From: Chrysemys picta bellii
Lineage: Eukaryota
DNA: 64,000 bases
Direction: 5' to 3'
Assembly (NCBI RefSeq): GCF_011386835.1
Contig: NC_088800.1
Location: 57,474,001 to 57,538,000 of the forward strand
Shown piece after piece: positions 1-19,200 of the stretch. How positions within the stretch are numbered: the stretch's first letter is position 1; every line of letters begins with the position of its first letter. Under the pieces are notes generated by a model, which had not been told where the DNA came from, did not search any database, and saw only the letters and a program-made list of their open reading frames with translations. The position numbers and the translations under genes were made by a program.

Positions 1-434
1 TCATACTGGGGATCGCTGGCATATGGAGGCATGGTCACCTGGAAAGATGCGCTGAGAGCACTACACGCCTTTCTGAGCAAACAGGAAGGGGATTTTCAAA
101 ATTCCCAGAGAATTTAAAGGGTGGGTCTGACGGTTGGTCACCTGAGGGCAGGGCAGTAGAGTTCAAAGTGATGACCAGAGTGGCTAGAACAGGCATTGTG
201 GGACACTTCAAGAGGCCAATCAGAGCACATTAATAGACCAGGATGTCTACACTGGCACTGTGGCACTCCAGCCGGGGCGCAGCAAGCATTATGCTTCTCA
301 TGGAGGTGGATTACCAGGAGCGCTCCAGCCGTGGAGTCCAGGCACTCTACGTGCCTTGCCAGTGTGGACGCGTCATGAGTTAGGGCACCCAGGGCTGCTT
401 TAATGCGCTCTAACTCACAAGTGTAGCCAAGCCC
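1..434 (-). mobile_element. Terminal part of a long Harbinger/PIF DNA transposon copy (truncated by window start), including the start of its Myb/SANT gene
   Basis: 1-434 aligns by eye with ~57690-58107 of the full element (GGAGGCATGGTCACCTGGAAAGAT..., Myb ATG on minus strand at 32). It ends in the TIR-like ...CAAGTGTAGCCAAGCCC at 434. Confidence 0.8.
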
Positions 435-583
435 ATAGCTTATGCCTCTCACGGAGGTGGAGTAATTATGCCAATGGGCGAGCGCTCTCCCATCAGCATA
501 GTGTGTCTTCACCAGATGCACTACAGCGGTGCAGCTGCATTGGTGGAGCTACTCCAATGTAGCATGGTAGTGTAGACTTGCCC
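435..583. mobile_element. Remnant of an older CTACAC-type Harbinger MITE, apparently the host of the preceding element
   Basis: Ends in GTAGTGTAGACTTGCCC, the same terminal motif as other MITEs in the window. Confidence 0.55.
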
Positions 584-914
584 ATAGTCTGAAGCCAGAG
601 GCGCAACTGTGTAGCCAGCATGACAGAGGAGTGCAAGAAAGAGATTTCTTCAAATGAATTACCAGGAATCATAAAAGACACCTATCAAATGATTAAAGGC
701 CACCCTGTAGCTCTCTGTCCTCTTGTGGGGTCTCAGAGTCATTCCCCAGGTTGTGGTCAGGAACATACACTCAATACACAGGATACATAATTCAATGTTT
801 CCGTTAAATACCCAAACCAACAATTATTAATAAGCACCTCCAACCACCCCTCTGCCACAGATACTTAAAAACAATGAGGAAACCCTGTGATTAACTGTGG
901 GAGAAAGGAGATGC

Positions 915-2313
915 TAAAGCCATCATAAATAGGGGAATGGTGAATAGGAGGAGGGAGGTGATCATGATGGTCCCTTCTGGCCCATAGTCTGTGAGATGTT
1001 ACCGCTGTATACAGCATTGGGGAGAGCGATGCTGGACTGCTGCATGCAGTTCTACAGTCTAGATTTGGAAAAGGATGTTGAAAAACTGGAGAAGGTGCAG
1101 AAGTGAGACACAAAAATTATTCAAGGACTGAAAAAAAGGCCTGATCATGAGAGACTTACGGAGCTTTATTATGCTGTACCTCTATGGGGAGACAATGTCA
1201 GGTGCTAAGGGGCTCTTTAATCTAAGGGAGTGGGAAGCAGAACAAGAGTCAATGCCTGAAAGTTAAAGCCAGATAAATTCAAATTAGACATCAGGAACAA
1301 ATGTTAGCAGTGAGGGTGATTAAGCATGGGAACAAACTAACCCAGGTGGATTCTTCATCTCTTAATGTCTTCACATCAAGATCTGATACCTTTCTGGAAG
1401 ATATGTTTTAGCCAAACACAAGTCATTGGATTCAGTGCAGCGGGAATGGGCCTGTGTTATGCATAGGGCCCTACCGAATTCACAATCCATTTTGGTCAAT
1501 TTCACAGTCATAGGAATTAAAAAATCATAAATTTCATGATTTCAGCTATTTAAATCTGAAATTTCACAGAGTTGTAATTGTAGGGGTCCTGACCCAAAAA
1601 GGAGTTGCGGGGTGGTTGCAAGGTTATTGTAGGGAGGGGGTTGCAATACTGCTACCCTTACTTCTGTGCTGCTGCTGGTGGTGGTGCTGCCTTCAGAGCT
1701 GGGAAGCTGGAGAGTGGCGGCTGCTGGCCAGGAGCCCAGCTCTGAAGCAGAGCTGCAGTCAGCAGCAACGCAGAAGGATGGTATGGTATGGTACCGTATT
1801 GCCATCCTTACTTCTGTGCTGCTGCCCACAGAGCTGGGCCCTCAGTCAGCAGCCGCCACTCTCCAGCCGCCCAGCTCTGAAGGCAGCAACGCAGAAGTCA
1901 GGGTGGCATGGTACGATATTGCCACCCTTACTTCTGCACTGCTGCTGGCAGGGCACTGTCTTCAGAACTGGGCACCCAGCCAACAACTGCCACTCTCCAG
2001 CTGCCCAACTCTGAAGGCAGCACAGAAGTAAGAGTGTCAATGCCACAACCCCCCTAAAATAACCCTGTGACCCCCCTACAATTCCCTTTTGGGTCAGGAC
2101 CCCCAATTTGAGAAACGCTGGTCTCCCCCGTGAAATCTGTATCGTATAGGGTAAAAGCATACTAAAGACCAGATTTCACATGGGGGGAGGGGGCGGGGAA
2201 GGGGGAGAACAGATTTCATGGTCCATTACATGTTTTTTATGGCCAGGAATTTGGTAGGGCCCTAGTTATGTGGAAGATCAGACTAGATAATCTAGTGGGC
2301 TCTTATGGCCTTA
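915..2313 (+). mobile_element. CR1 LINE 3' fragment, interrupted by a hAT element at 1464-2264
   Basis: Contains typical CR1 3' text (AAGGATGTTGAAAAACTGGAGAAGGTGCAG..., AAATTCAAATTAGACATCAGG..., GACTAGATAATCTAGTGGGCTC) that resumes after the hAT TSD. Confidence 0.75.
1464..2264. mobile_element. Non-autonomous hAT-type element with internal ~120-bp tandem repeats
   Basis: TIRs TAGGGCCCTACC...GGTAGGGCCCTA; 8-bp TSD GTTATGCA (1456-1463) / GTTATGTG (2265-2272); repeated unit GCCACCCTTACTTCTG...CTCTGAAGGCAGC. Confidence 0.85.
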
Positions 2314-2715
2314 AAATCCATTAATCTTGCCCTTCTGGTTCATTTCTTGCTTTCTGTTCCTTTCCCCTATTTAGAGGTTTGCATTGCCCTTGGGAATCTC
2401 TGTGATAGAATTAAATAGCCTCCATGCTAAATGTAAGGATTTTAATTTCTTCCCTTTTCACTTTACGCTCTTTTTGATGAGTCTCCTCATTTCTGGGAAG
2501 TTCCCCTTCATAAAAGTCAGTGTCTCTGGGCTAAATTTTGGTATCTTCCTTTGTAGATGTAGAACGTAATTACATTCTTTTCACTGTTGCTTAGTCCTAA
2601 ATAACATGCAGGAGATTGTTAAAAAGTAACTATAGTTGAGCCACTATGTCAAGAATAGCTTCCCCTCTTGAGTGCTCCACTACTAGCTGCTCCAAGAAGT
2701 GATTGTTTGAGACTG

Positions 2716-3124
2716 TTGTTTCCAGCCACGGGTACTGTACGCCAAGGAGGTACGCAGAGGCCTTCCAGGGGATACATCAACTCATCTAGATATTTGCCTA
2801 GTTTTACAACAGGCTACATAAAAAGCACTAGCAAAGTCAGTACAAACTAAAATTTCATACGGACAATGACTTGTTTATACTGCTCTATATACTATACACT
2901 GAAATGTAAGTACAATATTTATATTCCAAATGACTTATTTTATAATATATATGGTAAAAATGAGAAAGTCAGCAATTTTTCAGTGATAGTGTGCTGTGAC
3001 ACTTGTATTTTTATGTCTGATTTTGTAAGCAAGTAATTTCTAAGTGAGGTGAAACTTGTGGGTATGCAAGACAAATCAGACTCCTGAAAGGGGTACAGTA
3101 GTCTGGAAAGGTTGAGAGCCACTG
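2716..3124. mobile_element. hAT-Charlie-like non-autonomous element
   Basis: Right end GGTTGAGAGCCACTG resembles a Charlie-type TIR; the left end is degenerate. Confidence 0.6.
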
Positions 3125-3584
3125 CTTTAGAAGACAATTTAGAAACAGAGAAAAGAAATAGGAAGATTTAACAGGTTTCCTAAAACTCCAGACAAGGATT
3201 GTGGTCAACATCTCTGCTCCTCATGCGCAGGAAAATTAAAATGAGAGGGTTTTTTTTGCAATTTTTCAAAATTTGGCCAGTTTTGTCACACTTTAAAAAC
3301 AATTGTCATATTCTTCCCCATTCCACATTCAGCGAGTGTGGAAGACATTCTTTTTAAACATTAAATCATATCACTAAAATGGGGTCAACATTTTCTCTCT
3401 CCCCCTTTATGGGAAAATGAGAACTGCACTTTGTGTAATGAAAGAATCCAAGGAGAGTCTGTTCCTGGCTCATGCAAAACTATTAGCCACCCCTGAGAGC
3501 TGCATGGAGCAGGAAGGAGCCGGGCAAGATACAACATGATGCAGAAGCAGAGCCTACAGACTTATGAAACACAGAACACAGTGA

Positions 3585-3665
3585 ATACTTAATCCTGCCA
3601 TGCGTGCAGGGGACTGGACTAGATGACCTCTCAAGGTCCCTTCCAGACCTATGATTCTATGAATC
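3585..3665 (+). mobile_element. CR1 (or CR1-tailed SINE) extreme 3' end
   Basis: GGACTGGACTAGATGACCTCTCAAGGTCCCTTCCAG...ATGATTCTATGA, the CR1 3' hairpin plus terminal octamer repeat. Confidence 0.75.
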
Positions 3666-3842
3666 TGAGCTGACAGGCACGATGTGAGGATCCTACCTAG
3701 AGGGATTAAAGAGTTGTGGAATACATGGTTTGAACCACCACTGATGTTAAGGGAATGATTCCCACTGACTTTCTTTGATGGGTGCTGTCTTGGCCCCAGC
3801 ATAAGCAGTAAAACACTTTCAAGTCCCCCAAGATATCTACAG

Positions 3843-4059
3843 TAGTGGTTCTCAAACTTTTGTACTGTGACCCCTTTCACATAGCAAGCCTCTGAGTGCG
3901 ACCCCCCCTTATAAATTAAAAACACTTTTTTATATATTTAACACCATTATAAATGCTGGATGTAAAGCAGGGTTTGGGGTAGAGGCTGACAGCTCGCAAC
4001 CCCCATGTAATAACCTCGCGACCCCCTGAGTGGTCCCGACCCCAGTTTGAGAACCTCTG
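3843..4059. mobile_element. hAT-Charlie-like MITE
   Basis: TIRs TAGTGGTTCTCAAAC...GTTTGAGAACCTCTG; perfect 8-bp TSD ATCTACAG at 3835-3842 and 4060-4067. Confidence 0.85.
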
Positions 4060-7000
4060 ATCTACAGCCTTATGCTTCACCTTTCAGGTCAGGCTTACAT
4101 GTTAGTAACCAAAACTTTTTAAACTTGTGCTCTGAGCCTGCAGCTGTGACGCAGACAGAACCATCATTAAGGCAATCTGGTCCAAAGAGGGCTTGCAGGG
4201 TCACCCTTTTAGATGTCAATGAAAACCAGGAAATATTACCAAAAGATCCTAGACACGCATTATCCACCTTGTCCCAAAATTGAAATCCTCCGTTGAATTT
4301 GATAGTCCCTTTCTATAATTTGTTAAATTCCCTTTTTAATCTGATTATTCCAGGGTTAGCTCAGGCAAAGATTTCTAACTCAAGACCACCTGTTCTTAAT
4401 CTTTTACAAACTGGATTGAATCTTGTAATTTGAATATAATAAATGTTAAAAAGCGAGAAAAGATATTTGATACCCCTCCCCCAAACGTACTTGTTATTCT
4501 AACTTGTGTCTCCTTTGGGCATTTTGGCCATTTACCTGTGAGAAGAGGTGCAATCACAGAGCAGAGAATGAAGATGAGGCTTGTGAACATTTCACTCAGA
4601 CTCATTGTCTTTGTCCAGGTTCATGCCATGTAGTTGGGCTCTGAGTTTCCTCTTCCCGGAGAAGGAACACCATTCAGTCTATCCATGCTTTGAGCAATGT
4701 GGGGATTTTGAATCTCAGCAAAGACTTTGTGTAGATGTCACTGCAGAGTGGAAACTGATCCTGTAATGATCAAGCCAGGAACAGGCATCCTCCTGCCTAA
4801 ACATCCAGATGCATTGCTTAGGAGGGCGTGGCCGCAAGGAATGCCAGGGATAATTGCATACAATCATCTGCTTAAAGGGTTGTGCAATTGCCCAACTAGA
4901 ATAGACAAGGCTGTCCCTGTTTTAACTGAACAGCTACTACATGTATTAAGGTAGGCCACTGCACAGGTAAAACCAGATTATTTTGTCTATTCTATTGCCC
5001 AGACTACTAGCCCTGTAATTACCAAAGGTGAGGAGTATCCCTTCCTAGGTACCTCACAGACACTCGATGCTGATGGTGCTGTCAATAGTACCAATACTGC
5101 GGCACAGATCAACGTCATGAAGTTCTTCCTGGTTGCCTACATGCAGAACAATAACTCAGTGTTCGGGGAGTCTGTGGGACCCAGCACATCTCCCCAACCT
5201 GGTGTTGCAACAACTCCTGCCAGTGAGAAGGAAGGAGATACGAAGGCTCCACAAGCCTGGCAGACAGAATTGATGGTAACACCATTGTGAATTCCACTGT
5301 CAAGGTGACAGAAGGAGAGAGTGAGAACAGGGTGCAGGGAAAGGTTCAGGTGAGGTTGCCTGGTAGCAATCCGGCATGTCCCTTTTGTGGGGATCATACT
5401 GGAAAACCAGCAGCTCTGAATATTCATCTTAAATGTAACCACGGTGGGAAGAATGTGGAGTTTCAATGTTCCCTGTGTGAGAAAATGGATCTAAATCCCC
5501 AAGTGTAAGAGATTGACATCACAGGACTCAGCTGATGACTGGGTTTGTGAAGTGTGTGCCAGATAGTGTGGCACCAAATCAGGTATCTCTCAACACAAGA
5601 GACTAACCCAGCTGGCAGAGTGGTACACAACAAAGAATGAATCCAAGCCAGTCAACCTAAATACAACTCACTGTGTGGAAAACACAAGAGTTATTAGATG
5701 GCCCAAGAAGAGTTACCCCTTACCAATTTTGGCAATATATACTTGGGCCAGAAGTATATTAATAAACTCATTGCAAAAGAACTGATCACCAAATCTGCTA
5801 AGCAAATTGGTGACAAAAGGAGGATGCTTGGTCTAACCAACAAGGACTCTTAGCCAGGACATGGAGCCACCATTTGTTATCTGGAAGTAAGATCTGATGA
5901 GCCCCAAACCACAATGGGGCTCAAAATTAAGAAAGGCCTGAAGGATCATGGCCATGAGGACTTTGAGACTAACAGCCTTAGTGCATGGGTTGAAGGAGAC
6001 GTAATGTCAGGTCTCTAGTTGAAACAACTTCCACTGGAGTTCTCTCCTCCTTCCTAATGAGAGCGACAAAGCTGCAAAAGAGATCAAAAAGAAAGCCAAG
6101 ACCAACAAGGGGAGGAAGGAGAAATCTTGGATGAGAAAAAGAGCAGCTAAAAGAGGTACTTAACTGAGGTACCAACAGCTTCATGACAACGACAGGTGTA
6201 AACTTGCCTCTATCATCCTTGATGGCATTGAACTCCTCCAGCGCCAAGTCCCACTCAAATATGTCCACCATGTGTACAGGGATAAGTGGGAGATCAAAAC
6301 GCTCTTTGATGGGTTGGGCCAATTTAGATCTCATGTCAGGGCTGATAATTTGGCATTTAACATCCTAATATCAGCTAAGGAAGTATTAAGAACATAAAAG
6401 AGAAGAATGGCTCCAGGTCCTGATGGTATCAGTTTGAAAGTTCTTGTCCATGTGGACCCTAACAGAGATATGTTGGAGGGGCTATTCAACAAATGGCTGA
6501 TTACAAATCCTGATGGTATTAAGGAATGTCCATCACTACTGATCCCAAAAATGATGGCACCAGAGGAGCTCAAGGATATCGCGAATTGGAGGCCTCTTAT
6601 CATCATTTGCTGTGGCTTTTCGAGAATGTTGAAAACAGGCTGGCTAAAGTGTGCCCATTAAATGAGAAACACAAGGGTTTATTTTGGCACCTGGCTGCTC
6701 AGAAAACCTGAATGTTCTTCACATCATAGTGAAGCAGGCAAAGAAGGACAAAAAGCCTCAGGAAGTCATATTTATACATATAGCCAAGGAATTCAATTCA
6801 GTGTCCCATGATCACATCATCTGGGTGCTGTGGGGAACGGCTTGGACCAGCACATGGTGAACACTCTTAATGACTCCTATAGGAACATCCATACCCTTAT
6901 AGAAGTGGGGAAGGAGCTCACACCTCTCCATTGGTATCAGGGTCAAACAAGGGAACCCCACGTTACTACTGCTAATTATCCTACCTCTTGATCCTCTGAT

Positions 7001-7938
7001 ATCAGTGCTAGAAAAGTCTGGTAGAGGATTCTCGTATGGGGCACAGAAAGTGACAGCTCTCGCCTTTGCAGATGATTTGATCTTGCTCAGTGACTTGTGG
7101 GAAGGCATGAATGGGATCATTGACGTTCTGGAGTCCTTTTTTAGGCTATCCAGCCTGAAGGTGCAAGCTAGAAAATGCCACAGATTCTTCCTGAGTCCAA
7201 CTCACAGCTCATACACTGTCAACAACTGTGAAGCCTGGAAGATAGGTACAGATGGGCTGAATATGATAATACCATGCGGGAGTCTGAGAAATATGTTGGT
7301 GTGAAGGTTGATCTATGAAGTGAGTTCTTCAAAGCTGCACTGTCTGATAAACTTGACACCTGGCTTGAGAGGATTGATAGGATCCATCTCAAGCCTTTAC
7401 AAAAACTGACATGGTGAATGGCTTCACTGTCCCTCAGGTTATCTATCTGGCAGATCCATACTGATTGTAAGAGAACTTCACTATCTTCCCTCAATAACAG
7501 CATGAGGAGGGCCATTAAGGAGTGGCTTCTTCCCCTGGCCAACACCTGCATTCGTGCCAGATCCAGGGATGGAGGTCTGGGCGTGATGAGACTCTCTAGC
7601 CTCATCCCAGCTATTCAGGCAGGGTGATGGCATAGAGAATTGCATGTTCCAAAGATGAGACATTTCTGAGCACTGCATAGTATATTGAGGAGGAGTTCAG
7701 CAGACTGTGGCTGGCAGCATGTGGGAATGAAAAGGCAGCACCTGCGATAACAGATCAAGTTCTGTTCTTGGACAATATCAGAATACCATATAGTGTCTTT
7801 TACCCATTCAATGAGTGGGAGATGCTCATTCCCAGGATCAAGTACCCAATCCCCTGTAGCTGGACAGATGCAGACTTCTCTAATGGAAAGAACTACCATG
7901 CTAAGGAATCCGGGTCAAACATTTCATAATGATCCAGT

Positions 7939-9126
7939 TGTGATGGGTTGGATCACAGAAACCCCCTTGGGAGCTGCCACCCGATGTGCAAAGACTACCC
8001 CTGCTTCTGTTTTCCCTGCCAGCTCAAGACTCCAGCACCCTGTCTTGCTGAGCCAGACACTCCCGTCTGGCTCCAGACACAGACCCAGGGTCTGAATCAC
8101 TTGTCTCAAAGCTGCAAGTTTACCTGAAAACAGCTCGCAGTAGCGTGCTTGTCTTTAGCACTCAGATGCCCAACTCCCAATGGGGTCTAAACCCAGATAA
8201 ATCCGTTTTACCCTGCATAAAGCTTATGCAGGGCAAACTCATAAATTGTTCGCCCTCTATAACACTGATAGAGAGATATGCACAGCTGGTTTGCTCCCCC
8301 AGGTATTAATACATACTCTGAGTAAATTACTAAATAAAAAGTGATTTTATTAAATACAGACAGTAGGATTTAAGTGGTTCAAAGTAGTAACAGACAGAAC
8401 AAAGTAAGTCACCAAGCAAAATAAAATAAAATGCGCAACTCTATGCCTAATCAAACTAAATACAGATAATCTCACCCTCAGAGATGCTTCAGTAAGTTTT
8501 TCTCAGACTGGACATCTTCCAGGCCTGGGCACAATCCTTTCCCCTGGTACAGCTCTTGTTGCAGCTCAGGTGGTAGCTAGGGGATTCTTCATGATGGCTT
8601 CTCCCCCTCTCTCTTCTCTTCCCCCCTTTATATATCTTTTGCATAAGGCGGGAACTCTTTGTCTCTCTGGGTTTCCACCCCCCCTCACTGGAAAAGCACC
8701 AGGTTAAAGATGGATTCCAGTTCAGGTGACATGACCACATGTCACTGCAAGACTTCATTACTCACTTGCCAGCACACACATATACAGGAAGACTCACAGG
8801 TAAATACAGCCATCTGCAGACAATGGGAGTCATCAAGATTCCAAACCATCATTAATGGACCACACTTTACACAATTACAATAGGCCCTCAGAGTTACATT
8901 TTATATTTCTAGTTTTAGATACAAGAGTGGTACATTTATACAAATCAGATGATCATACTCAGTAGATTATAAGCTTTGTAATGATACCTTACAAGAGACC
9001 TTTTGCATGAAGCATATCCCAGTTACGTTACATTCACTTATTACCGTATTTTCTCTAAAACCAGCTCAGTTACATTATATTGATTATCAAGTTTTTATAA
9101 AACCATATAGACTGCACAACGTCACA
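7939..9126 (-). mobile_element. Solo LTR (Gypsy/ERV-like) inserted in the R2 ORF
   Basis: TGTGAT...GTCACA termini; 5-bp TSD CCAGT at 7934-7938 and 9127-9131; its minus-strand 5' end resembles the LTR fragment at 12569. Confidence 0.85.
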
Positions 9127-9270
9127 CCAGTCAGCTATGATTGGCTCAGGAACCACATGTGTTTCAGAGCACCAGTTTCCAACAGCCTTAAAGTTGAGAA
9201 TGAATGTGTATTCCACCCGGGAATATCTAAGGCATGGCAAAGACAATCCCTTAGTGAGGTACAGACACTG

Positions 9271-9708
9271 CATAATGGTGTGGGGGTCTAGAACCCAGGT
9301 CTGCAGAGCTGCTAGGCAGTTAGCATCTCCATGCTGTCACCTAGCAGCAGCTGTAATGAGCCTGCACTCCACTGCCCATGACCTGCTATGGACACAGACC
9401 ATGGAACATCCCACCTCAAGGGGTCTGACAGGCAGCAGCCCCAAAGCTTCTGTTTGGCTCCTCACCCTATGCAAACCTCACCTGTAGATGCCAGGACCAT
9501 TCCTTGATCAACTCCTGAACTCCTGGCTTCGACCTCAGATTGATTTGGACTTCGCCTTCTGACTCAGACTCTGAAACCTGACTTGGACTCTGACCCTTGG
9601 TATCGACCCTGGCCTGGAATCTGACTGTGCTCTTCTCCACTACTCCCTGCCTCAGAGTTGCCCCTGCTCTGACCCTTAGTCCTGACTGCATTTGTTGGGA
9701 TCCTGACA
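9271..9708. mobile_element. Second LTR-like insert splitting the R2 zinc knuckle
   Basis: Flanked by CACTG/CATTG near-TSD; ends ...CCTGACA; internal short repeats (GACCCTGGCCTGGAATCTGACT-like). Exact ends are uncertain. Confidence 0.55.
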
Positions 9709-9993
9709 CATTGTTCTGCTAAATATGAATCGTTATCTCACATTTTGGGACAATACCCAGCAGTCCAACATGCCTGCATAAGGAGGCATAATAAGATGTG
9801 TGAGATTTTGGTAAAAGAGGCAAGGAAACTTGAGTGAGTTGTATATCAGGAACCAAAACTACACACTGATGATGGCAAACTGAGAAAAACAGACTTTTTA
9901 TTTGCAAAGGATGGAACAGCCCATATGGTCGATGCCATTGTTTGTTTTGAATATAGGGAGAAAGCATTCATGAACGCAGTGGCAGAGAAAGTG

Positions 9994-10855
9994 TCGTATA
10001 TACTCGATCATAAGCCGGTTCGTTTATAAGCCGACCCCCCCACCAAGATGGATAAGTAAAAACTGAAAAATTTTATAACCCGTTTATAAGCCGACCCTAT
10101 AATTCAGGGGTCAGCAAACTTTGGCTCCTGGGCCATCAGGATAAGCCGCTGGTGGTCCGAAATGGTTTGTTTACCTCAAGCGTCCGCAGGCAAGGAGGTA
10201 AATCTAAGTAAACAAAGTGTCCCGGTGCGCCAGCTGCTTACCCTGACGGGCCAGGACAGCAACTGGTGGGGAAATTTTTTGGGGGGGAGAAGCTGGGAGT
10301 CAGGGGAGTAACCCCTGTGATCACCCACGACATGACCCCACCCCTAGCCTGGGACCCCCACATTCTCCCCATCCCATCCCTTCCCAACTTATCTGGGGAG
10401 GGCCAGGGGAAGATGTCTGTGACCTGACTAGAGCTGCTCCGGCAGGCTGGGCAGCGTGGCCGCAGCCTGTTCCGGTGGGCCAGACCAGGCGGCGCGGCTG
10501 CAGCATGTTCCAGTGGGCTGGACCTGGCAGCTTGGCCACAGCGTGCTCCGGCGCCCGGGCAGCGTGGCCACAGCCTGCTCTGGGGTGTGGGGCCGAGTGG
10601 TACAGCTGCAGCCTGCCAGCCCCAGAGCTGCAGCTGCTTTGGAGGCTGGGAGGAGAGCAGCATGGCCAGAAGTGGAGAGACTCTGGCCCCACCTCTTCCC
10701 TTCTGTCTCTGCTGGCTGTGTCTTCTTGCTCCCTCTTTTGGGGGGAGGGGCTGTGTCCTACCTCTCCCTCTCTATACTCGTTCATAAGCCGACCCCCATC
10801 TCTGGTGCTTCCCTTTTTTACTAAAAAAATTCGGCTTATGAACGAGTATATATGG
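9994..10855. mobile_element. Tc/mariner (Tc2-like) non-autonomous element with a captured hAT-like fragment
   Basis: TIRs (C)CGTATATACTCGATCATAAGCCG / CGGCTTATGAACGAGTATATATGG; TA TSD (right intact at 10856-10857, left mutated to TG); internal CAGGGGTCAGCAAACT at ~10105. Confidence 0.8.
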
Positions 10856-11277
10856 TACAATATTATCAGTCTGTGACTGAACAATTCAAAAAATTGACAG
10901 GGGCCAAACAGGTCACCTATGATGGTTTCCACACCGGTGTGAAAAGGAATGGCGTAAGATAAATGACAAGCTATTATCACATCTTGGGATGTTGAACTAC
11001 AGGCAAGGACAAGCAACTAGACTGTTCAATCAGAAAGCCCTGCTGTACTCCACAGATATCATCAACATCTTTGCCAGCATAGGGAAGGGTGCTGGCAACC
11101 CTGCTGATACCAAGCTTGATGGTACTCCAAGGCGACATGTAGAAATCTCCTAACAACTATACCCCTTAATTCATGACTCTGTTCACTGAACATGGCAAAC
11201 TGGGTTGGATGGGCCATCTGAAGTATAGCACTCCCCAAATAACCTGAAAAAGAAACCTGTGGAGAGAGGGGTTCAAA

Positions 11278-11825
11278 TAGCCAAATGCCTCATCATCTAA
11301 TTAGAGATGCACATGAATGGATGAACGAGATTCCCACTCTACCCACCTACTGTCTAGTGAAACCACAGCCAAGGGAACAGGCTTGGCAGAATCAGCCAGG
11401 AAAGAAGAGCTTGTTGAGCTTGATTCTAATCTGGCACTGTGAAGAGATATGAGAGGTGTAAAATAAGTGAGAGACCTCTGGGCTGCTGGTGAAATACCAC
11501 TACTCATCATTTTACTCACTTTACCTGGTGAGGTGGGCCCGGGGGGGGGGGGGGGGGGAAGCCCCGAGTTGCTCTTGCTTCTGGCTCCAAATGTCCAGTG
11601 TGTGCTGGGCGCAAAAGCTCCAGGGGCAGTGTCAGGTGGGGAGTTTGACTGGGCCAATACACCTGTCAAACTGTAACACAGATGTCCTAAAATGAGATCA
11701 GAAAGGACAGACACCTCCTGTGGACCAGAAGGGCAAAAAAACTCACTTGATCTTGATTTTAAGTACGAATACAGACTGTGAAAGCAGGGCCTCGTGATTC
11801 TTCTGGCTTTCTGGGTTTTAAGCAG

Positions 11826-11865
<40 letters not shown>

Positions 11866-12441
11866 ACATCCCAAGCATTCATAGCAACATGGTATTTTGA
11901 GCCTTCAATGCTGGCTCTTCCTAACATTGTGAAGCAGAATTTACCAACTATTGGATTATTCACCCACTAATAGGGAATGCGAGTTGGGTTTAGACTGCCA
12001 TGAGACAGGTTAGTTTTAGTCTACTGATAATGTGTCATTGCAATAGTAATCCTGCTTTGTACAAGAGGAACCGCAGGTTCAGACATTTGGTGTGAGTGCT
12101 TGGCTGAAGAGCTAATGGGGCAAGCTACCATCTGTGAGATTATGACTGAACCCCTCTAAATCAGAATTCCCCCTAAACACAAAGATACAGCGGTAACATG
12201 GAGCCTTGGTAAGCCCTGGATAGCAGACCACCCTTTCTGTGGAAGCAGGGCATAGTGCGGAGAGCCATTAGTGTCAGGACTGGAGTGTGGACAGAAGGGA
12301 ACTGCCCCTCACCCATAGTGCACCACATGGTCATGAGGATCCTTGTGCTAAACCATTCGTAGATGACCTGATTACGGGTCAGGATTTCATGTGCAGCAGA
12401 GCAGCTAACTTACTGCATTCTATTGAATGTCTGAATTTGTC
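11278..12441 (+). pseudogene. 28S rRNA pseudogene, 3'-terminal ~1.16 kb, from the R2 target site to the mature 3' end
   Basis: Starts TAGCCAAATGCCTCATCATCTAATT and includes AGAAAAGTTACCACAGGGATAACTGGCTTG, CACCCACTAATAGGGAA and CTAAACCATTCGTAGATGACCTG. It ends CTATTGAATGTC..TTTGTC. Pervasive CpG>TpG/CpA decay marks it as non-functional. Confidence 0.95.
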
Positions 12442-12568
12442 TCTATTAACTAGAGAAAGATAGATTTTAAGTAATTATAAGTGGCAAGGCCGAATAATCA
12501 GAATTAGTTACAAAAGAAATAAAAAGATAAGCACACAAGCTAATTCTTAAACTTTACCAAGTTAAGGG

Positions 12569-13195
12569 TGTGACGTTGCACTCCATATGCTTTATGGAAA
12601 TATGCTTATGAATATGACATAACTGGAATATGCTTTATGCTAAATAGCCCGTGTAGGGTGTCATTAGAAAGCTTGTAATCTACTAAGTATGTTCATCCTA
12701 TTTGTTTGCATGTATTATTTCTATATCTGGAGTTAGAAGAATAAGCCCTGGTCTACATGGGGGGGGGGGGAAATCGCTCTAAGTTACGCAACTTCAGCTA
12801 TGTGAATAACGTAGCTGAAGTCGACATACTTAGGTCGACTTACTGTGGTATCTGGAGTCAACTGTTGCTGCTCCCCCGTCGCTGGAGTACAGGAGTCGAC
12901 GGGAGAGGGCTTGGGGGTCGATTTATCGCGTCTAGATTAGACACGATAAATTGATCCCCACTGGATTGATCGCTGCCTGCCGATCCAGGGGGTAGTGTAG
13001 ACATACCCTAAGATATAAACTTGTATCACTGATGTAAACAGATTAAGTGGAGGCCTTAAGGGTGCTCCAGAAACAATCAGTTGTAAATGGCCTTAGTTAC
13101 TTGAAAGCCTTCCTGTGTACATGTGGGCCAGCCCATGGGGAATGGAGACTAGGGGTCTTACAGTGACATGTGACCATAACATGTCATAACCATAT
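12569..13195 (+). mobile_element. 5' fragment of an LTR related to the 7939-9126 solo LTR, interrupted by a MITE
   Basis: Begins TGTGACGTTGCACTCCATATG; similar to the reverse complement of ~8700-9126 (AAAGCTT.TAATCTACT.AGT.TG.TCATC, GACATGTGACCAT). Confidence 0.65.
12745..13008. mobile_element. Harbinger MITE
   Basis: GCCCTGGTCTACA...GTGTAGACATACCC with TAA TSD on both sides (12742-12744, 13009-13011); related to 41601-41881 in the opposite orientation. Confidence 0.85.
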
Positions 13196-13228
13196 AAAAG
13201 TAGTGAACATGAGGTATAGGGTGTCACA

Positions 13229-13600
13229 CCCTAACATTAGCAAGGGAAGCCCTATCTTTAGGAAAACTAACTAGGAGACCCCAATGGGCATCAGGCCTAA
13301 GCCTAGCACAGGAATCCCTACCCTTAGTGACCCTAACCCTAGCCCAGGGAGCCTTTAGCCTACCCTAGCCTTAGTAACCCTAGCTGGGGAACCGCAACGG
13401 GCACCAAGTCTAATCCTAGTCCTGAAATCACTACCCATAGTAACCCTGACCCTAGCCTGGGGGCCCTACCTTCTGTAACCCCAGCTGGGGGACCCCAAAG
13501 AGCCCCTGACCTAACCCTAGCCTAGGAATCCCTGTACATAGTACCCCTAAATCTACCCAGGGGAGACCCCCTTAGTATCCCTAACCCCAGCCCCCTTCCC
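13229..13600. repeat. Degenerate telomere-like (CCCTAA/CCCTAG/CCCTGA) repeat array
   Basis: Many variants such as GACCCTAACCCTAGCC, TAACCCTGACCCTAGCC and GACCTAACCCTAGCC. Confidence 0.6.
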
Positions 13601-13639
13601 CCCTCCACCCACTTCACCCTCTGCTGCACCTCCCCTGGC

Positions 13640-13910
13640 GGGCCCCAGCCCTGGCCTCCCTCCCAAGCCGCCAGCCCGCAGCCAATGGCTCCGGCCGGGC
13701 CTGGGGGCGGGGCGCTACCGGCGGCGGAAGGGCGGGCGGGGCGGAGCCAGGCGGCGTTTCCGTGCCGTGGCGGAGGAGCCGGCCGGGCCCAAAGTTGCTC
13801 CGTTTCAAGCGGTAGGTGCCGGGCTCGGCCCCCAGCCCGGGGCCCGCTTCCCCCGTGATTGTTGGGCCTGCTGCCCCTGCCCGAGCCACTCCCGCCCGGC
13901 GGGGGGACCG
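13640..13910 (+). promoter_or_regulatory. WDR24: WDR24 CpG-island promoter and probable non-coding exon 1
   Basis: CpG-rich; CCAAT at ~13682; GC boxes GGGCGGGCGGGGCGG; donor CG|GTAGGT at 13811; candidate acceptor TTTACAG| at 15750 leading to the ATG at 16203. Confidence 0.65.
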
Positions 13911-13914
13911 AGGA

Positions 13915-14430
13915 GAGGGGGCAGGGGTACGAAAGGGGGGGCAGGGGCTGCCGCGGGAGGGCGTGGGGGTAAGGAAGAGAGGTGGGGGGACCGAGGGGTG
14001 GGGGTAAGGAAGGGGCGGGAGTGTGAGGGGCTAAGGAAGGGGCGTGGGGATCGAGAGGAGGGGGGGGTAAGGAAGGGGCAGGACCGAGGAGGGGTGAGGG
14101 GGGTAAGAAAGAGAGATGGGGAAACTGGGAGGGCAGGGGGTAAGAAAGGGTCAAGGAGGGGGGGCAGGGAGACTGAGGGTAGGAGTTTGGGGGGGCAAGA
14201 AAGGGTCAAGGAGGGGGGGCAGGGAGACTGAGGGTAAGAGTTTGGGGGGGTAAGGAAGAGAGGAGGTGGGGACCGAGAGGAGGGGGCGGGGTGTAAGGAG
14301 GGAGCAGGGGGACTGAGGGGAGAGGGCAAGGAAAAGGAGCAGGGGGACTGATGGGAGGGGGCAGGGGTAAGGAAGGGGAGCCATGGGCTGCCAAGGGAGG
14401 AGGTGGAGATTAAGAAAGGGCTTGGGGGGA
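13915..14430 (+). repeat. G-rich purine low-complexity tract with a repeated GGGGTAAGGAAG unit
   Basis: About 8 copies of GGGGTAAG(G/A)AAG; strong G skew downstream of the inferred TSS. Confidence 0.75.
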
Positions 14431-14826
14431 GCTATTCTAAGCAGGGAGACCCAGGCTACTAGCCCTCTTGTAAAGAGCCCCATCACCCCAAACCGTCCAC
14501 CCTTCTGCTAGTCAGCTGCCCTTCTCTGTAGGGAGCACCAGACCCATGGCTGTAAAGGATCGGCAACCGACTGCTTTGTTGTCTTGGCCCCCCTCTCAAC
14601 GTGAGGTTCCAACCTCCAAGGCTGTGGTTGCCTGGAGAGGCAATTTTATCGTTACTTTGCTGTATGCTTTGGGGCACCTTGAGGAACGTTAGGGGGTAGA
14701 GGGTTGTGTGAAACCAGAATGTGTTCCTCACTGAGGTTTAGCAGCATGCCAAGGCTCCTTCCCATCCCTCAGGAAGATCTCAAAATGGATGAGAGGATTT
14801 AAATGCTGGTGAACAGTTATCTATAA

Positions 14827-15267
14827 CACGGTTTCTCAACCCGGGGTGGGGACCCAAAATTGGGTTGCCAGAATGTTTCAGAGGGTCTTGTGGCAGTTCC
14901 CATCCCAAAGGGGTGGCTGGGCTCACCTCCCTGCTCCAGGCACTGCAACCTCTGGAATCCCACTGCCACTTAGATGTGTCCGGGTGGCCAAATTTGAGTG
15001 AGTGGCACTGCAACCCCATGAGTCAGGTCACAACTCCTCTTCTACAATTTGGTCCCAGTGCTGCAACCCCAGAGTTTGCAATGCCTGGAGCGGAGAGCCA
15101 AGCCCAACAGCTCCACAGCACAAGAGCTGCCACTATGGGGTGAGTGCTGGGCAGGACCTGACTGAAACCCCACCCTATGGCCTCCACCCCCAGACTATTT
15201 ACGGGGTCCCGACAGGCCATATACATTTATAAATGGGTTGTGAGTCCAAAAAGGTCGAGAACCACTG
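14827..15267. mobile_element. hAT-Charlie-like non-autonomous element
   Basis: CACGGTTTCTCAACC...GGTCGAGAACCACTG; TSD ATCTATAA / ATCTAAAA. Confidence 0.8.
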
Positions 15268-16202
15268 ATCTAAAACCTCAGCTCGGTGATCCTGCTGCCC
15301 TGACTTCGTATTGGTGCCAGTGAGAAAGCACGAGAACTGTGTGGGAGGATGGCAAACATGGCTCTAAAATGAGGGATGCTTGGCATTTTCTCAGCAGAGA
15401 GGCCTAGGATGGGGGTTTGAACTCTAATTTCACCGCATTAGGTGGACCCTCCATGGTTGAGGTACGCTGTCAGTATGGAGAGCTTGCTCCATTGCTGCCT
15501 GTGCTGTAGTTGTGTGGATAACAAACACTGCCTCCCTCTATTGCAGTCACTCTTCAGCACTAAATTCAGTATTAGAACAAAAATGAAATTCTTTCTCTGG
15601 TGCTTGCACCAATTTGGGCATTATGACCTTATGATGAAGAAGTCTGCAGTCTAATCCTGTTATGTCTTGTATTACTGAACAGCTCATTGGCTCACTTCTG
15701 TCCTTATCCCTGCATTTTGCCTTCTGAGGGATTCTTCTCTTGCTTTACAGGCCCTTACTGACAGCTTCAGCAAGAGTTGTTCCTGCAAGTGGGGTATTTT
15801 CTCAGATATTTGAATTAAGAAGGAAACTGAAATCTCTGAAAGGTTAACATGGACTTACTGGAAAGTACATGCAGGGAGTGACCAAGGAGACACCAGGGCT
15901 GAATCTGAGCTACTCTGTTAAGTAAGTGGCTGTGCAGTAGTTTCTGTAGTTAAAGACTGATTGATTAATGTGATCAGGGAAAGTGATATGCAAGTCTGGT
16001 TGGAACAGTAGAAAGAGAATCCTAGATGCTGCATAAATTAATTCATTTGCTTTCAAGAAGGTTTTAATGAGGTCTGTAAGCAGTTGGTGGAAATGGACTC
16101 ACCTGTGAGAATGCTGCATGTGGAGATATAAGTCTCAAAGCCTTCTCTTTGGGCAGGGCATCCAGTGGTGTCTAAGGAGAGGAAGTCACACAGAGGACAA
16201 CC

Positions 16203-19200
16203 ATGGAGAAAATGGCCAGGGTTACCACTGCCCTTGGTGGCAACACCATCACTGGACGTACCATGTTCTGTCACCTGGATGCCCCTGCTAATGCCATCAG
16301 TGTGTGTCGTGATGCTGCTCAGGTGGTGGTAGCTGGCCGCAACATCTTTAAGATCTATTCAATTGATGAAGATCAGTTTGTGGAGAAGCTAAACTTGCGT
16401 GTTGGCCGTAAGCCATCCCTGAACTTCAGCTGTGCTGATGTGGTGTGGCATCAGATGGACGAGAACCTGTTGGCCACAGCAGCTACCAATGGTGTGGTGG
16501 TGACCTGGAACCTCGGGAAGCCATCCCGTAACAAACAGGACCAGCTGTTCACTGAACACAAGCGGACAGTTAACAAAGTGTGCTTCCATCCCACTGAGGT
16601 GTATATGCTCCTCAGTGGCTCCCAGGACGGCTATATGAAATGCTTTGACCTACGCAAGAAAGACTCTGTCAGCACCTTCTCTGGTAAGGGCTCTGGCCAT
16701 GTCTACAATGCAGAGCCTATGCTGGGATAGGCTGCATAGTGTAGACACAGTGTTAGCCGACAGGAGAGGAGTTCTTCCGGTGTAGTAACGTCATCTTCCC
16801 ATACAGCGTTAGCTAATGTGACAGAAGAGTGCATCTGTTGGCATAGCTATGTCACTAGGGCTGTGGTTTTTTTCACACTCATAACCAACATAGCTATGCC
16901 AGTATAAGTTTTAAGTTTAGACCAAGCCCCAATCTTGGGCCCACTTGGCCAGTGTTCTGTGCATTAGGATGCTTATTGCATATGCTGCAGGCTGGAGTTG
17001 TCAATTATCACCTTAAATAAGGGGAAACTACCAGACAATCCCCATGTTCCAGGCCTTTGTCCCTCTGATCTCTTTGTGCTTCATTGTGGTAAAGATTTAC
17101 CCCTTCTGGGGCTATGATGATACAAGCAAGGGATCGGGGGACAGATTCCCTGCTGGTGGGACTTCTAGTCTGTAGCAGCCAGTGATGTAAGCCTATGTCA
17201 TTATCATCTGGGGTCTCAGGCTCACGACATGCAGCTTTTTGGTCTGATTTGAAAATTGTCTGTAGCCGATGTCTAGAGCTGCATTATCTGTGTCAGTTGT
17301 TAGGGTGGTGTTAGAGCTGTTGGGGGAGGGTGGATCTACTTCCCATTGTCCTTGAATCATACCCTCTTTCCACCCACATCCCAACTCAGTTGCCCATATC
17401 TGGTGCCTTGAAGTCTGGGAGCTTAGGAAAGCAGCGGTTTTGATACCCAGTCAATAACTGTGTCAAGGGAGATAGACTAGGACAAAAAAAGTGTGACGGA
17501 CAGGTGCTGGATTGACAGCACTGAAGTTCTCTATTTATGGACTACGTAGGGCAGAAGCAGTGCCAGCTTTGCAAAGGAAACTGTTCTGAACCAGAGTGGT
17601 CACTGGTTTCCCTTGGAGCATTAGTAGAGGTGATTTCTGCTTTTCCTACACCCAGGGTGCACTGGGCTGAGTCCAGGAGAGAATCAAGCTGGCCTGCCAT
17701 TGGCAGCTTATTGTAAACCCTGTCTAGCAAATATGAGCGTTAACACCACCAGGGGGAATGACTTTGCTGGGGCCCTGTCGGATCTGGTCTACGTTCCTAT
17801 TGTCCCTCAGGCCAGTCGGAAAGCGTGCGTGATGTGCAGTTTAGCATCCGTGATTATTTCACCTTTGCTGCAACCTTTGAGAATGGGAACGTGCAGCTGT
17901 GGGACATCCGCCGGCCAGACCGCTACGAGAGGATGTTCACAGCTCACAATGGGCCTGTTTTCTGCTGTGACTGGCATCTAGAGGACAGGTATGTGCTATA
18001 CCTACCACCCCGGTTGAGCCCCACTCTGCTCATGGCGATCACTCTCTTGTCAAAAAATTCCTGAAGGTGGTGCCTTCACACAGTGGTTCTGTGAAAACTG
18101 TCCAGTGGGATGCTGAGAACTTGATGAGCACATGGCTCTCTCTTGAATATCGGACGGAGCAGCGTGGCTTATAAAACAAGTCACTCTTGCTGTTCTGTGG
18201 GATAGCCAGCAGTAACTAGTAAACCAGAAGTGAGCTGCTGGAACTGGGCAATATCGGGTATGTCCAGCGTGTTTCACCAACTTGATCAGCTCAGGGAGTG
18301 AGAGGGCTGCTTTAAAACACAAGATTGCTTGTGTCTTAGGCATGTTTGCCATGCTGCCATTAGGTATAAACTGAGATTCACCAGGAGGAAAAGTCAGATT
18401 TCCCAGTAAATAATTAATTTATACTAAAAAAAATGTTGCATGCAACTCCTGGACCCTGAACAGCCTCCTGGAACTCCTTGTCCATCTCATGCTGGGGAGC
18501 TATCTTCACAAGCTGAGAGAAGCATAAAGTACCTAAAATTAGCCTTTTTGTCCTCTGCTTTTATTCATGGGGGGGAAGAGGGGAATGGAAGCCCCTCTCA
18601 TTTTCACTGACTGAAATGCAAAGGGCAGTTTGCCTTAAATCGGGGAAACCAAATTTTCTCAACCAGGGGCTGGAGGGCCTCATCTAATCTGAATAAAATG
18701 GAAGATATTGCATCCTCCCTTTAGTTTAATATGCAGGTGTCGTTGTAAGAGCTACAGGTCCCAGCATGCACAGTTCCCTTTTGATATGGTTGGAATCTGC
18801 ACGCTGGGACCTGTAGTTTTGCTGAGCTATGCCTCCATGCTAAAAGAGAGGGTGCCCAAAGCCTGTGCTTGTTTAGTGCCATGTAGCTGGCAGGCAGCAC
18901 TTTGACCACCTGTAGCCTAAAAGGCTTGCATAAAAAGCCAATAATCCAAGATCAACTTCCAGGACATTTCTCCAGTAAACGTTTCTGCTTGTTCCTTTCT
19001 CCCTCCTGCCAGGGGCTGGCTGGCGACAGGAGGCCGAGATAAGATGGTGAAGGTCTGGGACATGAACACCAACAGGGCCAAAGAGATCTACTGCGTGCAA
19101 ACCATAGCCTCTGTGGCGAGGGTCAAGTGGCGGCCTGAGTGCAAGCACCACATCGCCACCTGCTCCATGATGGTGGACCACAACATCTACGTGTGGGATG

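Follow-up and report, generated by a model that had tools for sequence, protein, structure and literature searches.

How does an R2 retrotransposon still joined to the 28S sequence downstream of it come to lie outside the rDNA, and does it record an RNA? The formation of the R2 RNA 3' end in vivo is still unsettled and bears on where R2 reverse transcription starts, a question that is now practical, with bird and turtle R2 proteins in use for gene insertion. In a 64-kb stretch of Chrysemys picta bellii contig NC_088800.1 (the window, whose own positions are used throughout) there is an orphan R2-28S chimera outside the rDNA, demonstrable from 4976 to 12441. The initial annotation had described such a chimera and proposed that both of its ends match an RNA, the 5' end lying where the R2 ribozyme cuts and the 3' end at the site of 28S maturation. 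The chimera itself is borne out, a decayed R2 (4976-11277) being joined to 1,164 bp of 28S. Its parts and surroundings are as follows.

4712..4975, + strand: possible R2 N-terminal coding remnant, sharing its frame with the first R2 protein hit
4976..7950, + strand: decayed R2 ORF, residues 60-1083 by tblastn, 70% at the DNA level to rDNA-borne R2 over 5018-7935, with many stops and frameshifts
about 5370-5500, + strand: N-terminal zinc fingers (Pfam)
about 6400-7300, + strand: reverse transcriptase (Pfam RVT_1)
7951..9154, unstranded: nested repeat insertion(s) later than R2, lacking R2 homology; boundaries approximate
9155..9271, + strand: R2 ORF piece, residues 1097-1135 (tblastn, 61.5% identity)
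9272..9708, unstranded: second nested insertion, a gap separating R2 protein pieces; boundaries approximate
9709..9999, + strand: R2 ORF piece from the C-terminal, endonuclease region, residues 1134-1230 (tblastn 66%), with a DNA match to rDNA-borne R2 at 9724-9992
10000..10854, unstranded: third nested insertion, in the gap between R2 pieces, with terminal inverted repeats (inverted TATACTCG(A/T)TCATAAGCCG termini)
10855..11277, + strand: end of the R2 ORF (to about 10991; tblastn residues 1228-1273) and 3'UTR, finishing ...GGGGTTCAAA
11278..12441, + strand: 3' 1,164 bp of 28S rRNA, beginning at the canonical R2 site (TAGCC...) and ending ...TTTGTC (Rfam and own-rDNA alignment)
12442..12560, unstranded: AT-rich downstream flank, not ETS-like, 27% GC, unique in the genome and not aligning to the present ETS
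12561..13235, unstranded: young repeat, 94-95% identical to other copies in the same genome, inserted after the R2-28S event
13600..13820, + strand: CpG-island promoter-like stretch (73% GC; CCAAT box, GC boxes, splice donor), context outside the fossil

The R2 part is interrupted by three later insertions, and tblastn with the ORF of the living R2 covers residues 60-1273 in pieces between 4976 and 10991. Stop-free pieces gave Pfam signals for zinc fingers and RVT_1, and zinc fingers, reverse transcriptase and C-terminal endonuclease region are all present in an ORF broken by stops and frameshifts. For the 3'UTR (10948-11277), alignments were obtained with an rDNA R2 that has a true 3' end (L034) and with orphan copies on C3 and C11. 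Within the first insertion, 7954-8465 shares 88% identity with a copy of a repeat that sits at another R2 position in L035. The initial annotation had counted a near-full-length R2 of about 4 kb net; of this, about 3.8 kb can be demonstrated, and a length of about 4.07 kb is reached only by counting the open frame at 4712-4951.

The canonical R2/28S join claimed at 11277/11278 was confirmed by both the Rfam LSU model and the alignment to the species' own rDNA. The junction, GGTTCAAA/TAGCC, is that of the canonical R2 site TTAAGG^TAGCC; in a local scan TAGCCAAAUGCC was placed directly after CUCUUAAGG of the Rfam LSU model, and the stretch ...GGTTCAAA/TAGCCAAATGCC, an R2-type 3' junction, also aligns to reference position 14050. 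Since the junction is canonical, R2 and 28S derive as one piece from an R2-occupied rDNA unit. The match to Rfam LSU_rRNA_eukarya spans 11387-12448 (587 bits), the local LSU scan extends to model position 3401/3401, and the own-genome 28S is 83% identical over 11278-12439. The 28S part had been said to run for about 1.16 kb to the mature 3' end at 12441. The length holds, and the end holds to within 0-13 nt: it is exact at 12441 only with a 13-nt deletion between two CTTTG repeats, and is otherwise 13 nt short. As in a tailless retrocopy, the 28S thus stops 0-13 nt from the mature RNA terminus, and neither ETS nor IGS follows it.

What does follow is the unique flank of 119 nt (12442-12560), whose 27% GC contrasts with 72% in the present 3'ETS, in agreement with the claimed lack of a GC-rich 3'ETS. 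Upstream 28S, 18S, 5.8S, ETS, IGS or other rRNA sequence was found nowhere else in the 64-kb window by Rfam and own-rDNA alignment. No poly(A) or other tail was seen. A target-site duplication was likewise not found: of the direct repeats shared by 4450-4990 and 12436-12475, the best scores at null level, with decay of about 12-17% and an approximate 5' boundary. The downstream flank has a marginal likeness to the R2 target (16/22, p about 0.05), and no upstream target mimic was seen. Farther out, the young repeat is split by a MITE (about 12742-13013) and is followed by a minisatellite (13236-13600) that matches dispersed arrays and not rDNA contigs. The promoter-like stretch at 13600-13820 we take to be the WDR24 5' exon, and the ORF at 16203-16730 presumably corresponds to WDR24, its product resembling the N-terminus of that protein.

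The 5' side is another matter. The claim that this end lies at the ribozyme cut is not supported, and the idea of an RNA match at both ends fails on this side: R2 homology begins at ORF residue 60, with neither a detectable ribozyme nor a 28S leader before it. No HDV-like ribozyme was detected in 4300-5400 at E<=10 and no HDV core motif was found, while the same scan detects the ribozyme of the living R2 (drz-agam-1, 27.7 bits, E 0.0012). The initial annotation had proposed folding this end; the fold of 4500-4760 was unremarkable (z = +0.8). Zebra-finch-type R2 ribozymes cut 28 nt upstream of the insertion, within 28S (PMC3774820). In this genome the P1' strand of both the living R2 and its short derivative is complementary to 28S positions -28 to -22/-23, and rDNA copies of the derivative bear a copied 24-25-nt 28S leader. 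From the cut site, the P1' pairing and these leaders, it follows that a full-length ribozyme-released retrocopy should start with about 25-28 nt of 28S. This leader (GGCGGGAGTAAC...) is absent: over 4000-5300 the best match to upstream 28S is 15/28, not above null. No upstream 28S was found in 1-20000 either; its claimed absence before the R2 stands, and the R2 is not enclosed on its 5' side by 28S.

The initial annotation placed the start at 4700, but upstream of 4976 there is no detectable R2 homology, and 4100-5017 is unique in the genome; neither the 5'UTR nor the N-terminus of the living R2 found a match in this region. Read in the R2 phase, 4712-4951 forms an open run of 80 codons and a single stop lies between it and 4976, versus seven stops in each of the other two frames; such open frames arise in 0.4-6% of random frames. 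No homology of 4712-4975 to any R2 was found, and HMMER with the 80 residues returned only PPR/TPR/LysM repeat proteins. The 5' boundary can be placed between about 4500 and 4976, and the 5' end of the insert is either truncated, in the 5'UTR or the N-terminal region, or decayed past recognition. The ribozyme may have been lost in either way.

We place a probability of roughly 0.6 on an RNA-defined 3' end as the best reading of the segment, and a reverse-transcribed R2+28S transcript as its most likely source. Of the RNA-copy interpretation first offered, the orphan chimera and the right end at the 28S terminus (0-13 nt) are retained and the RNA-matched 5' end is not. An RNA intermediate is favoured because the right end coincides with the mature 28S terminus to this precision, with no spacer and no upstream 28S. 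An R2 at the normal 28S site would have been transcribed within pre-rRNA, giving an RNA made of R2 and the whole downstream half of 28S, with a 3' end from ordinary 28S maturation or a few nt away. Reverse transcription would have begun at or near this end, the product being joined to a non-rDNA site upstream of WDR24. The most economical candidate for the enzyme is R2's own protein, which presumably would bind the R2 3'UTR carried by that RNA and, where the target lacks 28S homology, may begin from the RNA terminus and not from the R2/28S junction; another LINE acting in trans could also have been responsible. The insert would then have decayed neutrally, to a non-CpG divergence of about 12%, and have received the three nested repeats. 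Its 28S part is now at a non-CpG K2P distance of 0.116, with 51% of CpG positions changed and GC lowered from 55% to 47%. If turtle neutral rates of 0.5-1e-9 per site per year are assumed, its age would be roughly 100-230 Myr. On this reading the fossil is a dead, very old retrocopy without function.

Other R2 copies also lie outside the rDNA of this genome. They carry 0, 4, 164 or 226 nt of downstream 28S (none in C3a, 4 nt in C11, 226 nt in C1), and together with the fossil they show that vertebrate R2 is imperfectly confined to the rDNA. The initial annotation had proposed a search for other R2+28S copies ending at the 28S terminus: orphans with 28S tails exist, but those bearing longer tails stop within 28S (+164, +226) and not at its terminus, of which the fossil is the single instance. 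A different case is C16b (C16:13.518-13.526 Mb; L035/L047), about 110 kb from the live rDNA array, where a degenerate R2-occupied unit runs into ETS/IGS-like sequence at 75-81% identity. It is a DNA-level rDNA relic, and because it continues into ETS/IGS, such relics are recognisable in this genome; the continuity into upstream 28S, 3'ETS or IGS that is detectable there is not seen in the window.

It is nevertheless conceivable, if unlikely, that the segment is itself a DNA-level fragment of an R2-occupied unit (an orphon, extrachromosomal rDNA or filler DNA at a break), with breakpoints that fell by chance in the R2 5' region and at the 28S end, or with a short ETS stub since decayed. There is neither a target-site duplication nor a tail, the 28S end is defined only to within 13 nt, and orphan pieces of a DNA-level or unprocessed kind do occur in this genome (the ETS/IGS of C16b; C3b, with 183 nt of upstream 28S). 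Moreover, an old DNA fragment would likewise lose its homology at the 28S end, since 28S is conserved and the fast-evolving spacers turn over, so that the coincidence with the terminus could be partly an artefact of detection. The sole counter to such fading is the AT-richness of the 119-nt flank, at 27% against 72% GC in the ETS, a gap far wider than the fall seen in the adjoining 28S. Against a DNA fragment in general, there is no upstream 28S, a conserved sequence that would be seen, and a chance breakpoint within 13 nt of the terminus has a probability of about 1%, allowing for three 28S-tailed orphans. The exact 28S end and the canonical junction would also be accounted for in two steps, by a 5'-truncated, tailless 28S retropseudogene that held the R2 site and later received an R2, the upstream stub being lost as the 5' junction formed. 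The available part of one survey reports ten human 5'-truncated, tailless 28S retropseudogenes, and outside mammals tailless retropseudogenes solely in the green anole, with none in chicken or platypus, and makes no mention of turtles (PMC5322556). In this turtle, C3b is a small orphan 28S piece with an R2-derived element. This history needs two rare events and a deletion. Nothing of the upstream 28S survives, even though that side of the site is recognised by A-clade R2 proteins (PMC12203849), and we consider a two-step origin distinctly unlikely.

The complete form of the original proposal, in which the segment would be the entire image of a ribozyme-released R2 RNA running from the HDV-like cut to the 28S maturation site, gains something from a net length of 3.8-4.07 kb, near the approximately 4.29 kb of the living element, and from an R2 frame open back to 4712. 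It is decidedly improbable in view of the 5' results: no ribozyme detected by a scan that finds the control, the unremarkable fold, the missing 25-28-nt leader and the lack of homology to the living 5'UTR or N-terminus. Finally, mis-assembly is a classic hazard with rDNA and R2, and nucleolar organisers move in evolution, so that two more origins must be weighed, a chimera made in assembly and the last trace of an organiser once present at this locus. The heavy decay (17% divergence from present rDNA) and the three nested repeats exclude a mis-join with present-day rDNA reads. The 28S-end/flank stretch is present in sequencing runs of eight organism labels from nine studies, all of its sampled words occur in four runs labelled otherwise than the probable source sample, and every label found in the run search holds the insert's 3' junction stretch. 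An assembly chimera, which the initial annotation had named as a refuting outcome, is therefore very unlikely; with no further rRNA piece in 64 kb, we find this pair of explanations hardly credible.

The preferred reading, an RNA-defined 3' end, would make the fossil circumstantial genomic evidence that R2 RNA can stay joined to the 3' half of 28S up to its matured end, and, equally circumstantially, that such an RNA can be copied to a new locus. Since there is one old copy and its 5' end is not fixed, it offers no proof but a hypothesis and a search image; orphan R2+28S copies could be tabulated by the end point of their 28S tails. A bolder and rather improbable version sees in the fossil a full or almost full image of the R2 template RNA in vivo, freed from pre-rRNA on its 5' side, never separated from the downstream 28S and ending at the mature 28S terminus, where the R2 reverse transcriptase started at a nicked foreign site. 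If true, this would be the first genomic record of R2 particles carrying the entire downstream half of 28S, and the 3' end of R2 RNA would be defined simply by rRNA 3'-end maturation.

In LINE-1 3' transduction, read-through RNA carries downstream flanking DNA to a new locus. The likeness lies in an element RNA that outruns the element, with host sequence copied along; however, L1 relies on a poly(A) site downstream, and its insertions have an A tail and a target-site duplication, whereas rRNA maturation would set the end of the fossil, in which no tail or duplication is seen. The C16 relic shares with the fossil an old R2 joined to downstream 28S off the live array, but runs on into ETS/IGS. 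Tailless retropseudogenes are reverse-transcribed from non-polyadenylated RNAs, 5'-truncated 28S among them, and lack an A tail as the fossil does; in the available part of the report they are attributed to relaxed L1, the defining set is 3'-truncated internally and flanked by target-site duplications, and none is described there as R2-fused (Noll et al. 2015, PMC5322556). In Drosophila, the rDNA-specific elements R1 and R2 also occur off 28S, and some R1 insertions at non-28S sites bear as many as 14 nt of downstream 28S, taken as evidence that 28S is retained at the 3' end of the template RNA (Stage & Eickbush 2009, PMC2718515). There the tail is at most 14 nt and documented for R1, whereas the turtle fossil, very old and in a vertebrate, has 1,164 nt reaching the 28S end. 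In vitro, R2 RNA with 28S after its 3'UTR was a competent, even preferred template, as cited in a later account (Luan & Eickbush 1996, via PMC12203849). Those tails were short and the target native, while in the fossil reverse transcription would have started, in a foreign target, from the terminus of a 1.16-kb tail.

The R2-28S fusion described in the initial annotation was borne out. The window carries a decayed R2 of ~3.8 kb net (~4.07 kb counting the in-phase open stretch 4712-4951; the living, rDNA-borne R2 element measures ~4.29 kb), followed at the canonical junction 11277/11278 by 28S sequence. Rfam returned a single rRNA match in the 64-kb window, LSU_rRNA_eukarya at 11387-12448 (587 bits). 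In a local Rfam scan the 28S match reached model position 3401/3401, and TAGCCAAAUGCC of the window came immediately after CUCUUAAGG of the model, which is the R2 insertion site. When aligned with rDNA of the same genome, for which contig C61 was the reference, positions 11278-12439 showed 83% identity to 28S. No 18S, 5.8S, upstream 28S, ETS or IGS was found elsewhere in window positions 1-20000, and the claimed absence of upstream 28S therefore stands. At the DNA level, 5018-7935 is 70% identical to the rDNA-borne R2, with a second match at 9724-9992. At the protein level the match covers residues 60-1273 of the living R2 ORF, which is intact, 1,310 aa long and RVT_1-positive. The gaps between the pieces are three later repeat insertions.

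R2 pieces and downstream repeats (window positions; protein matches are from the living R2 ORF compared with the window)
4976-7925, R2 protein match
9155-9271, R2 protein match
9709-9999, R2 protein match
10855-10991, R2 protein match
10948-11277, R2 3'UTR, alignable to L034, an rDNA R2 whose 3' end is genuine
12561-13235, young repeat, after a 119-nt unique flank
13236-13600, CCCTAGCC-type minisatellite, directly upstream of a CpG island

Relative to present rDNA, 10.7% of non-CpG sites in the 28S part have changed (K2P 0.116), as have 51% of CpG positions, with G>A and C>T predominating; the R2 ORF has about one stop per 35-70 codons in addition to frameshifts. If neutral sites in turtles change at 0.5-1e-9 per site per year, as we assume, the insertion dates back roughly 100-230 Myr. 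A 411-bp stretch across the 28S end and its flank was present in sequencing runs of eight organism labels from nine studies, with every sampled word recovered in four runs labelled differently from the probable source sample; the 5' region of the window likewise occurs in runs under several organism labels.

In present-day rDNA, 28S terminates in ...GAAAGTCAGCCTTTGACACAAGACTTTGTC and is followed by an ETS of 72% GC. In the window it terminates in ...GAATGTCTGAATTTGTC, followed by TCTATTAAC..., and this end can be aligned in two ways: with a 13-nt deletion between two CTTTG repeats, the true terminus being kept, or with the 28S halting 13 nt before the terminus. Judging from the aligned sequence, the end is 0-13 nt from the mature terminus under either alignment. 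The stop at the mature 3' end claimed at first thus holds within that range, its exactness depending on the assumed 13-nt deletion. The missing GC-rich 3'ETS was also confirmed, as the 119 nt after the 28S, unique in the genome, have 27% GC against the 72% of the present ETS, while the GC content of the adjoining 28S dropped merely from 55% to 47%. The start of the ETS gave no signal in the downstream flank (p = 0.62), and the TCT after TTTGTC, identical to the first three ETS bases, is uninformative. The minisatellite after the young repeat has relatives on ordinary chromosomes (C13, C9 and C4) and not on rDNA contigs, and a CpG-island promoter-like stretch comes after it. The 28S end and flank TGTCTCTATTAACTAGAGAAA (12438-12459) match the native R2 target TGACTCTCTTAAGGTAGCCAAA at 16/22 positions with one gap, a marginal likeness (p ~0.05; 5% of random 50-nt windows do as well) that is only a lead. 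Farther on, at 13950-14360, tandem repeats rich in G (periods 55-62, GC skew 0.64) directly follow what we presume to be the first exon of WDR24.

The other end of the copy did not follow the initial annotation, which had placed it at a ribozyme cut. Positions 4100-5017 are unique in the genome and have no similarity to the 184-nt 5'UTR and first 59 codons of the living R2. No 5'UTR or N-terminal homology was found to the R2 copies on C15, C24 and C16 (the C16b copy listed below), and the 5' region showed no similarity to the short R2 derivative of this genome. This missing homology is weak evidence, because alignments between R2 lineages end at shared conservation boundaries (window ~5010 or ~5292). 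Neither Smith-Waterman nor ungapped alignment of 4000-5300 with the final 60 nt of upstream 28S rose above the null, the best match to a 28S leader being 15/28. Neither Rfam (E<=10) nor a motif search detected an HDV-like ribozyme in the 5' region, the fold of 4500-4760 is unremarkable (MFE z = +0.8), and no target-site duplication was detectable around the insert. As a positive control, Rfam drz-agam-1 (HDV-like) found the living turtle R2 ribozyme (27.7 bits, E 0.0012), with the core CCTCCCCGTGG followed by TCCCGCT pairing with 28S -28..-22. With no leader, HDV-like hit, notable fold or target-site duplication detected, a ribozyme-cut 5' end is unsupported; the copy is 5'-truncated, or its 5' end is unreadable. 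A template jump onto 28S upstream of R2, suggested by the 10-nt match AAGACTTTGT at 4721-4730, was dismissed as chance, because 4100-5000 scored below the null in local alignment with the 28S 3' half. The 80-residue open frame at 4712-4951, run with HMMER against 1.8 billion proteins, hit only PPR, TPR and LysM repeat proteins, and we regard these hits as spurious. Several sequencing runs guessed to be RNA contain about a quarter of the words sampled from 4450-5100, so that transcription may extend over part of the sequence at the R2 5' end or upstream of it.

Ribozymes of the zebra-finch-type R2 cleave within 28S, 28 nt upstream of the insertion site (PMC3774820). The painted turtle genome (G000) has a ~800-bp non-autonomous R2 derivative without an ORF, which occupies the R2 site of rDNA units and combines a 5' R2-type ribozyme core (AACCTCCCCGCGGTGCCCGCCGG) with an R2-like 3'UTR.

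rDNA copies of the ~800-bp R2 derivative
L051, G000:C201:59064-62087
L052, G000:C201:75901-78924
L053, C447:26337-29360

At their 5' junction, marked here by a slash, these rDNA copies carry 24-25 nt of copied 28S leader (AAGG/(G)CGGGAGTAACTATGACTCTCTTAA; AAGG/(G)CGGGAG...CTCTTAA), which fits ribozyme cleavage at ~-28 and full-length reverse transcription. Because they carry this leader, ribozyme-released R2-type RNA would start here with ~25-28 nt of 28S that are copied into DNA. The derivative resembles SIDE elements, which have so far been reported from Drosophila (PMC3414825), and has one copy outside rDNA (C3b, listed below). As for longer R2 copies, the one in the rDNA of C61 (L025+L026, G000:C61:49760-54049) has an intact ORF (1,313 aa open), is 3'-truncated, lacks the 3'UTR and runs into a 284-bp duplicate of the 28S stretch immediately preceding the insertion site; in the C105 and C125 copies the 3' end is preserved and the frame is open for 1,329 aa. 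Intact ORFs of ~1,272-1,316 aa also form a large family dispersed over many chromosomes (e.g. C10:74069352-74072540 and C6:121571044-121574232); they are 37% identical to the R2 protein in residues 181-999 and 45% identical in residues 1058-1274. First-look candidates numbered 33,275; of ~30 dispersed copies scored, only two contained stops. The family looks like a relative of R2 that lives outside rDNA, was active recently and may be of R4/Dong type.

Other R2 copies outside live rDNA arrays
C3a, L027:5523-7008 (C3:156.447 Mb), old R2 3' fragment, no 28S behind
C11, L045:5295-5705, minus strand (C11:65.908 Mb), GGTTCAAA-ending lineage, then TAGC only
C1, L030:3994-6903, minus strand (C1:97.227 Mb), 5'-truncated R2 with 226 nt of 28S at the canonical site
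C3b, L046:4118-4912 (C3:70.878 Mb), short R2 derivative within a 28S piece, -183 to +164
C16b, L035:3304-8965 and L047:128-1650 (C16:13.517-13.526 Mb), degenerate R2-occupied rDNA unit

Among the R2 pieces compared, only the window's copy has a 28S tail that reaches the terminus. C11 and C3a, both old R2 3' fragments at off-target sites, share the lineage of the window's copy (71-79% identity). The C1 orphan is younger and of a different R2 lineage; its 28S, 96.8% identical to rDNA, ends inside the gene at ...GCTGGTGA, and no target-site duplication was found there. Upstream of C11, C3a and C1, no sequence resembles the 28S target to a significant degree.

It is probable (about 0.6) that the window's copy derives from an RNA intermediate that owed its 3' end to 28S maturation. 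This reading fits because the right end is at the mature 28S terminus, with no spacer behind it and no upstream 28S. As the junction is canonical, R2 and 28S would have left an occupied rDNA unit together, as a single piece; the RNA, its 3' end formed by 28S maturation, would then have been copied into a non-rDNA site. The simplest enzyme would be R2's own protein, which presumably binds the 3'UTR of the same RNA and, off target, would act without the 28S homology that normally fixes the start at the junction. The initial annotation saw an RNA at both ends: the 3' side is supported (0-13 nt from the terminus, no spacer), the 5' side, with neither leader nor ribozyme detected, is not. That fuller version, in which the 5' end is an intact ribozyme cut, falls within the RNA reading, and we give it little credence.

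A DNA fragment of an R2-occupied unit would need a chance breakpoint near the terminus or an ETS stub no longer recognisable; we consider it unlikely. What a DNA-level relic looks like is seen in C16b, which is recognisable as such and serves as a contrast to the window's copy: its old R2 and 28S run on into ETS/IGS-like sequence (75-81% identity), ~110 kb from the rDNA array of the same chromosome, its 28S (90% identity) being broken at ~position 870 by other repeats. Tailless retropseudogenes, 5'-truncated 28S among them, are described in PMC5322556, and such a 28S copy, hit later by R2, would also end at the terminus; it would have had to lose its upstream stub, and this order of events seems quite improbable. 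Assembly from present-day rDNA reads is impossible in view of the 28S divergence, the stops and frameshifts of the R2 ORF and the three repeat insertions since, and an artefact of this kind or a NOR relic is hardly credible.

The window's copy is a single ancient fossil, for which half of the original claim fails, and it bears on the way in which R2 RNA acquires its 3' end. No published R2 copy with the whole downstream 28S came up in full-text literature searches. Among the known relatives of this finding is L1 3' transduction. In vitro, 28S-tailed R2 templates can be used, according to work cited in PMC12203849. Insertions of R1 and R2 outside 28S are known in Drosophila, where R1 carries at most 14 nt of downstream 28S (PMC2718515), whereas the copy described here carries the entire downstream 28S in a vertebrate host; what is new is this scale and the end point.
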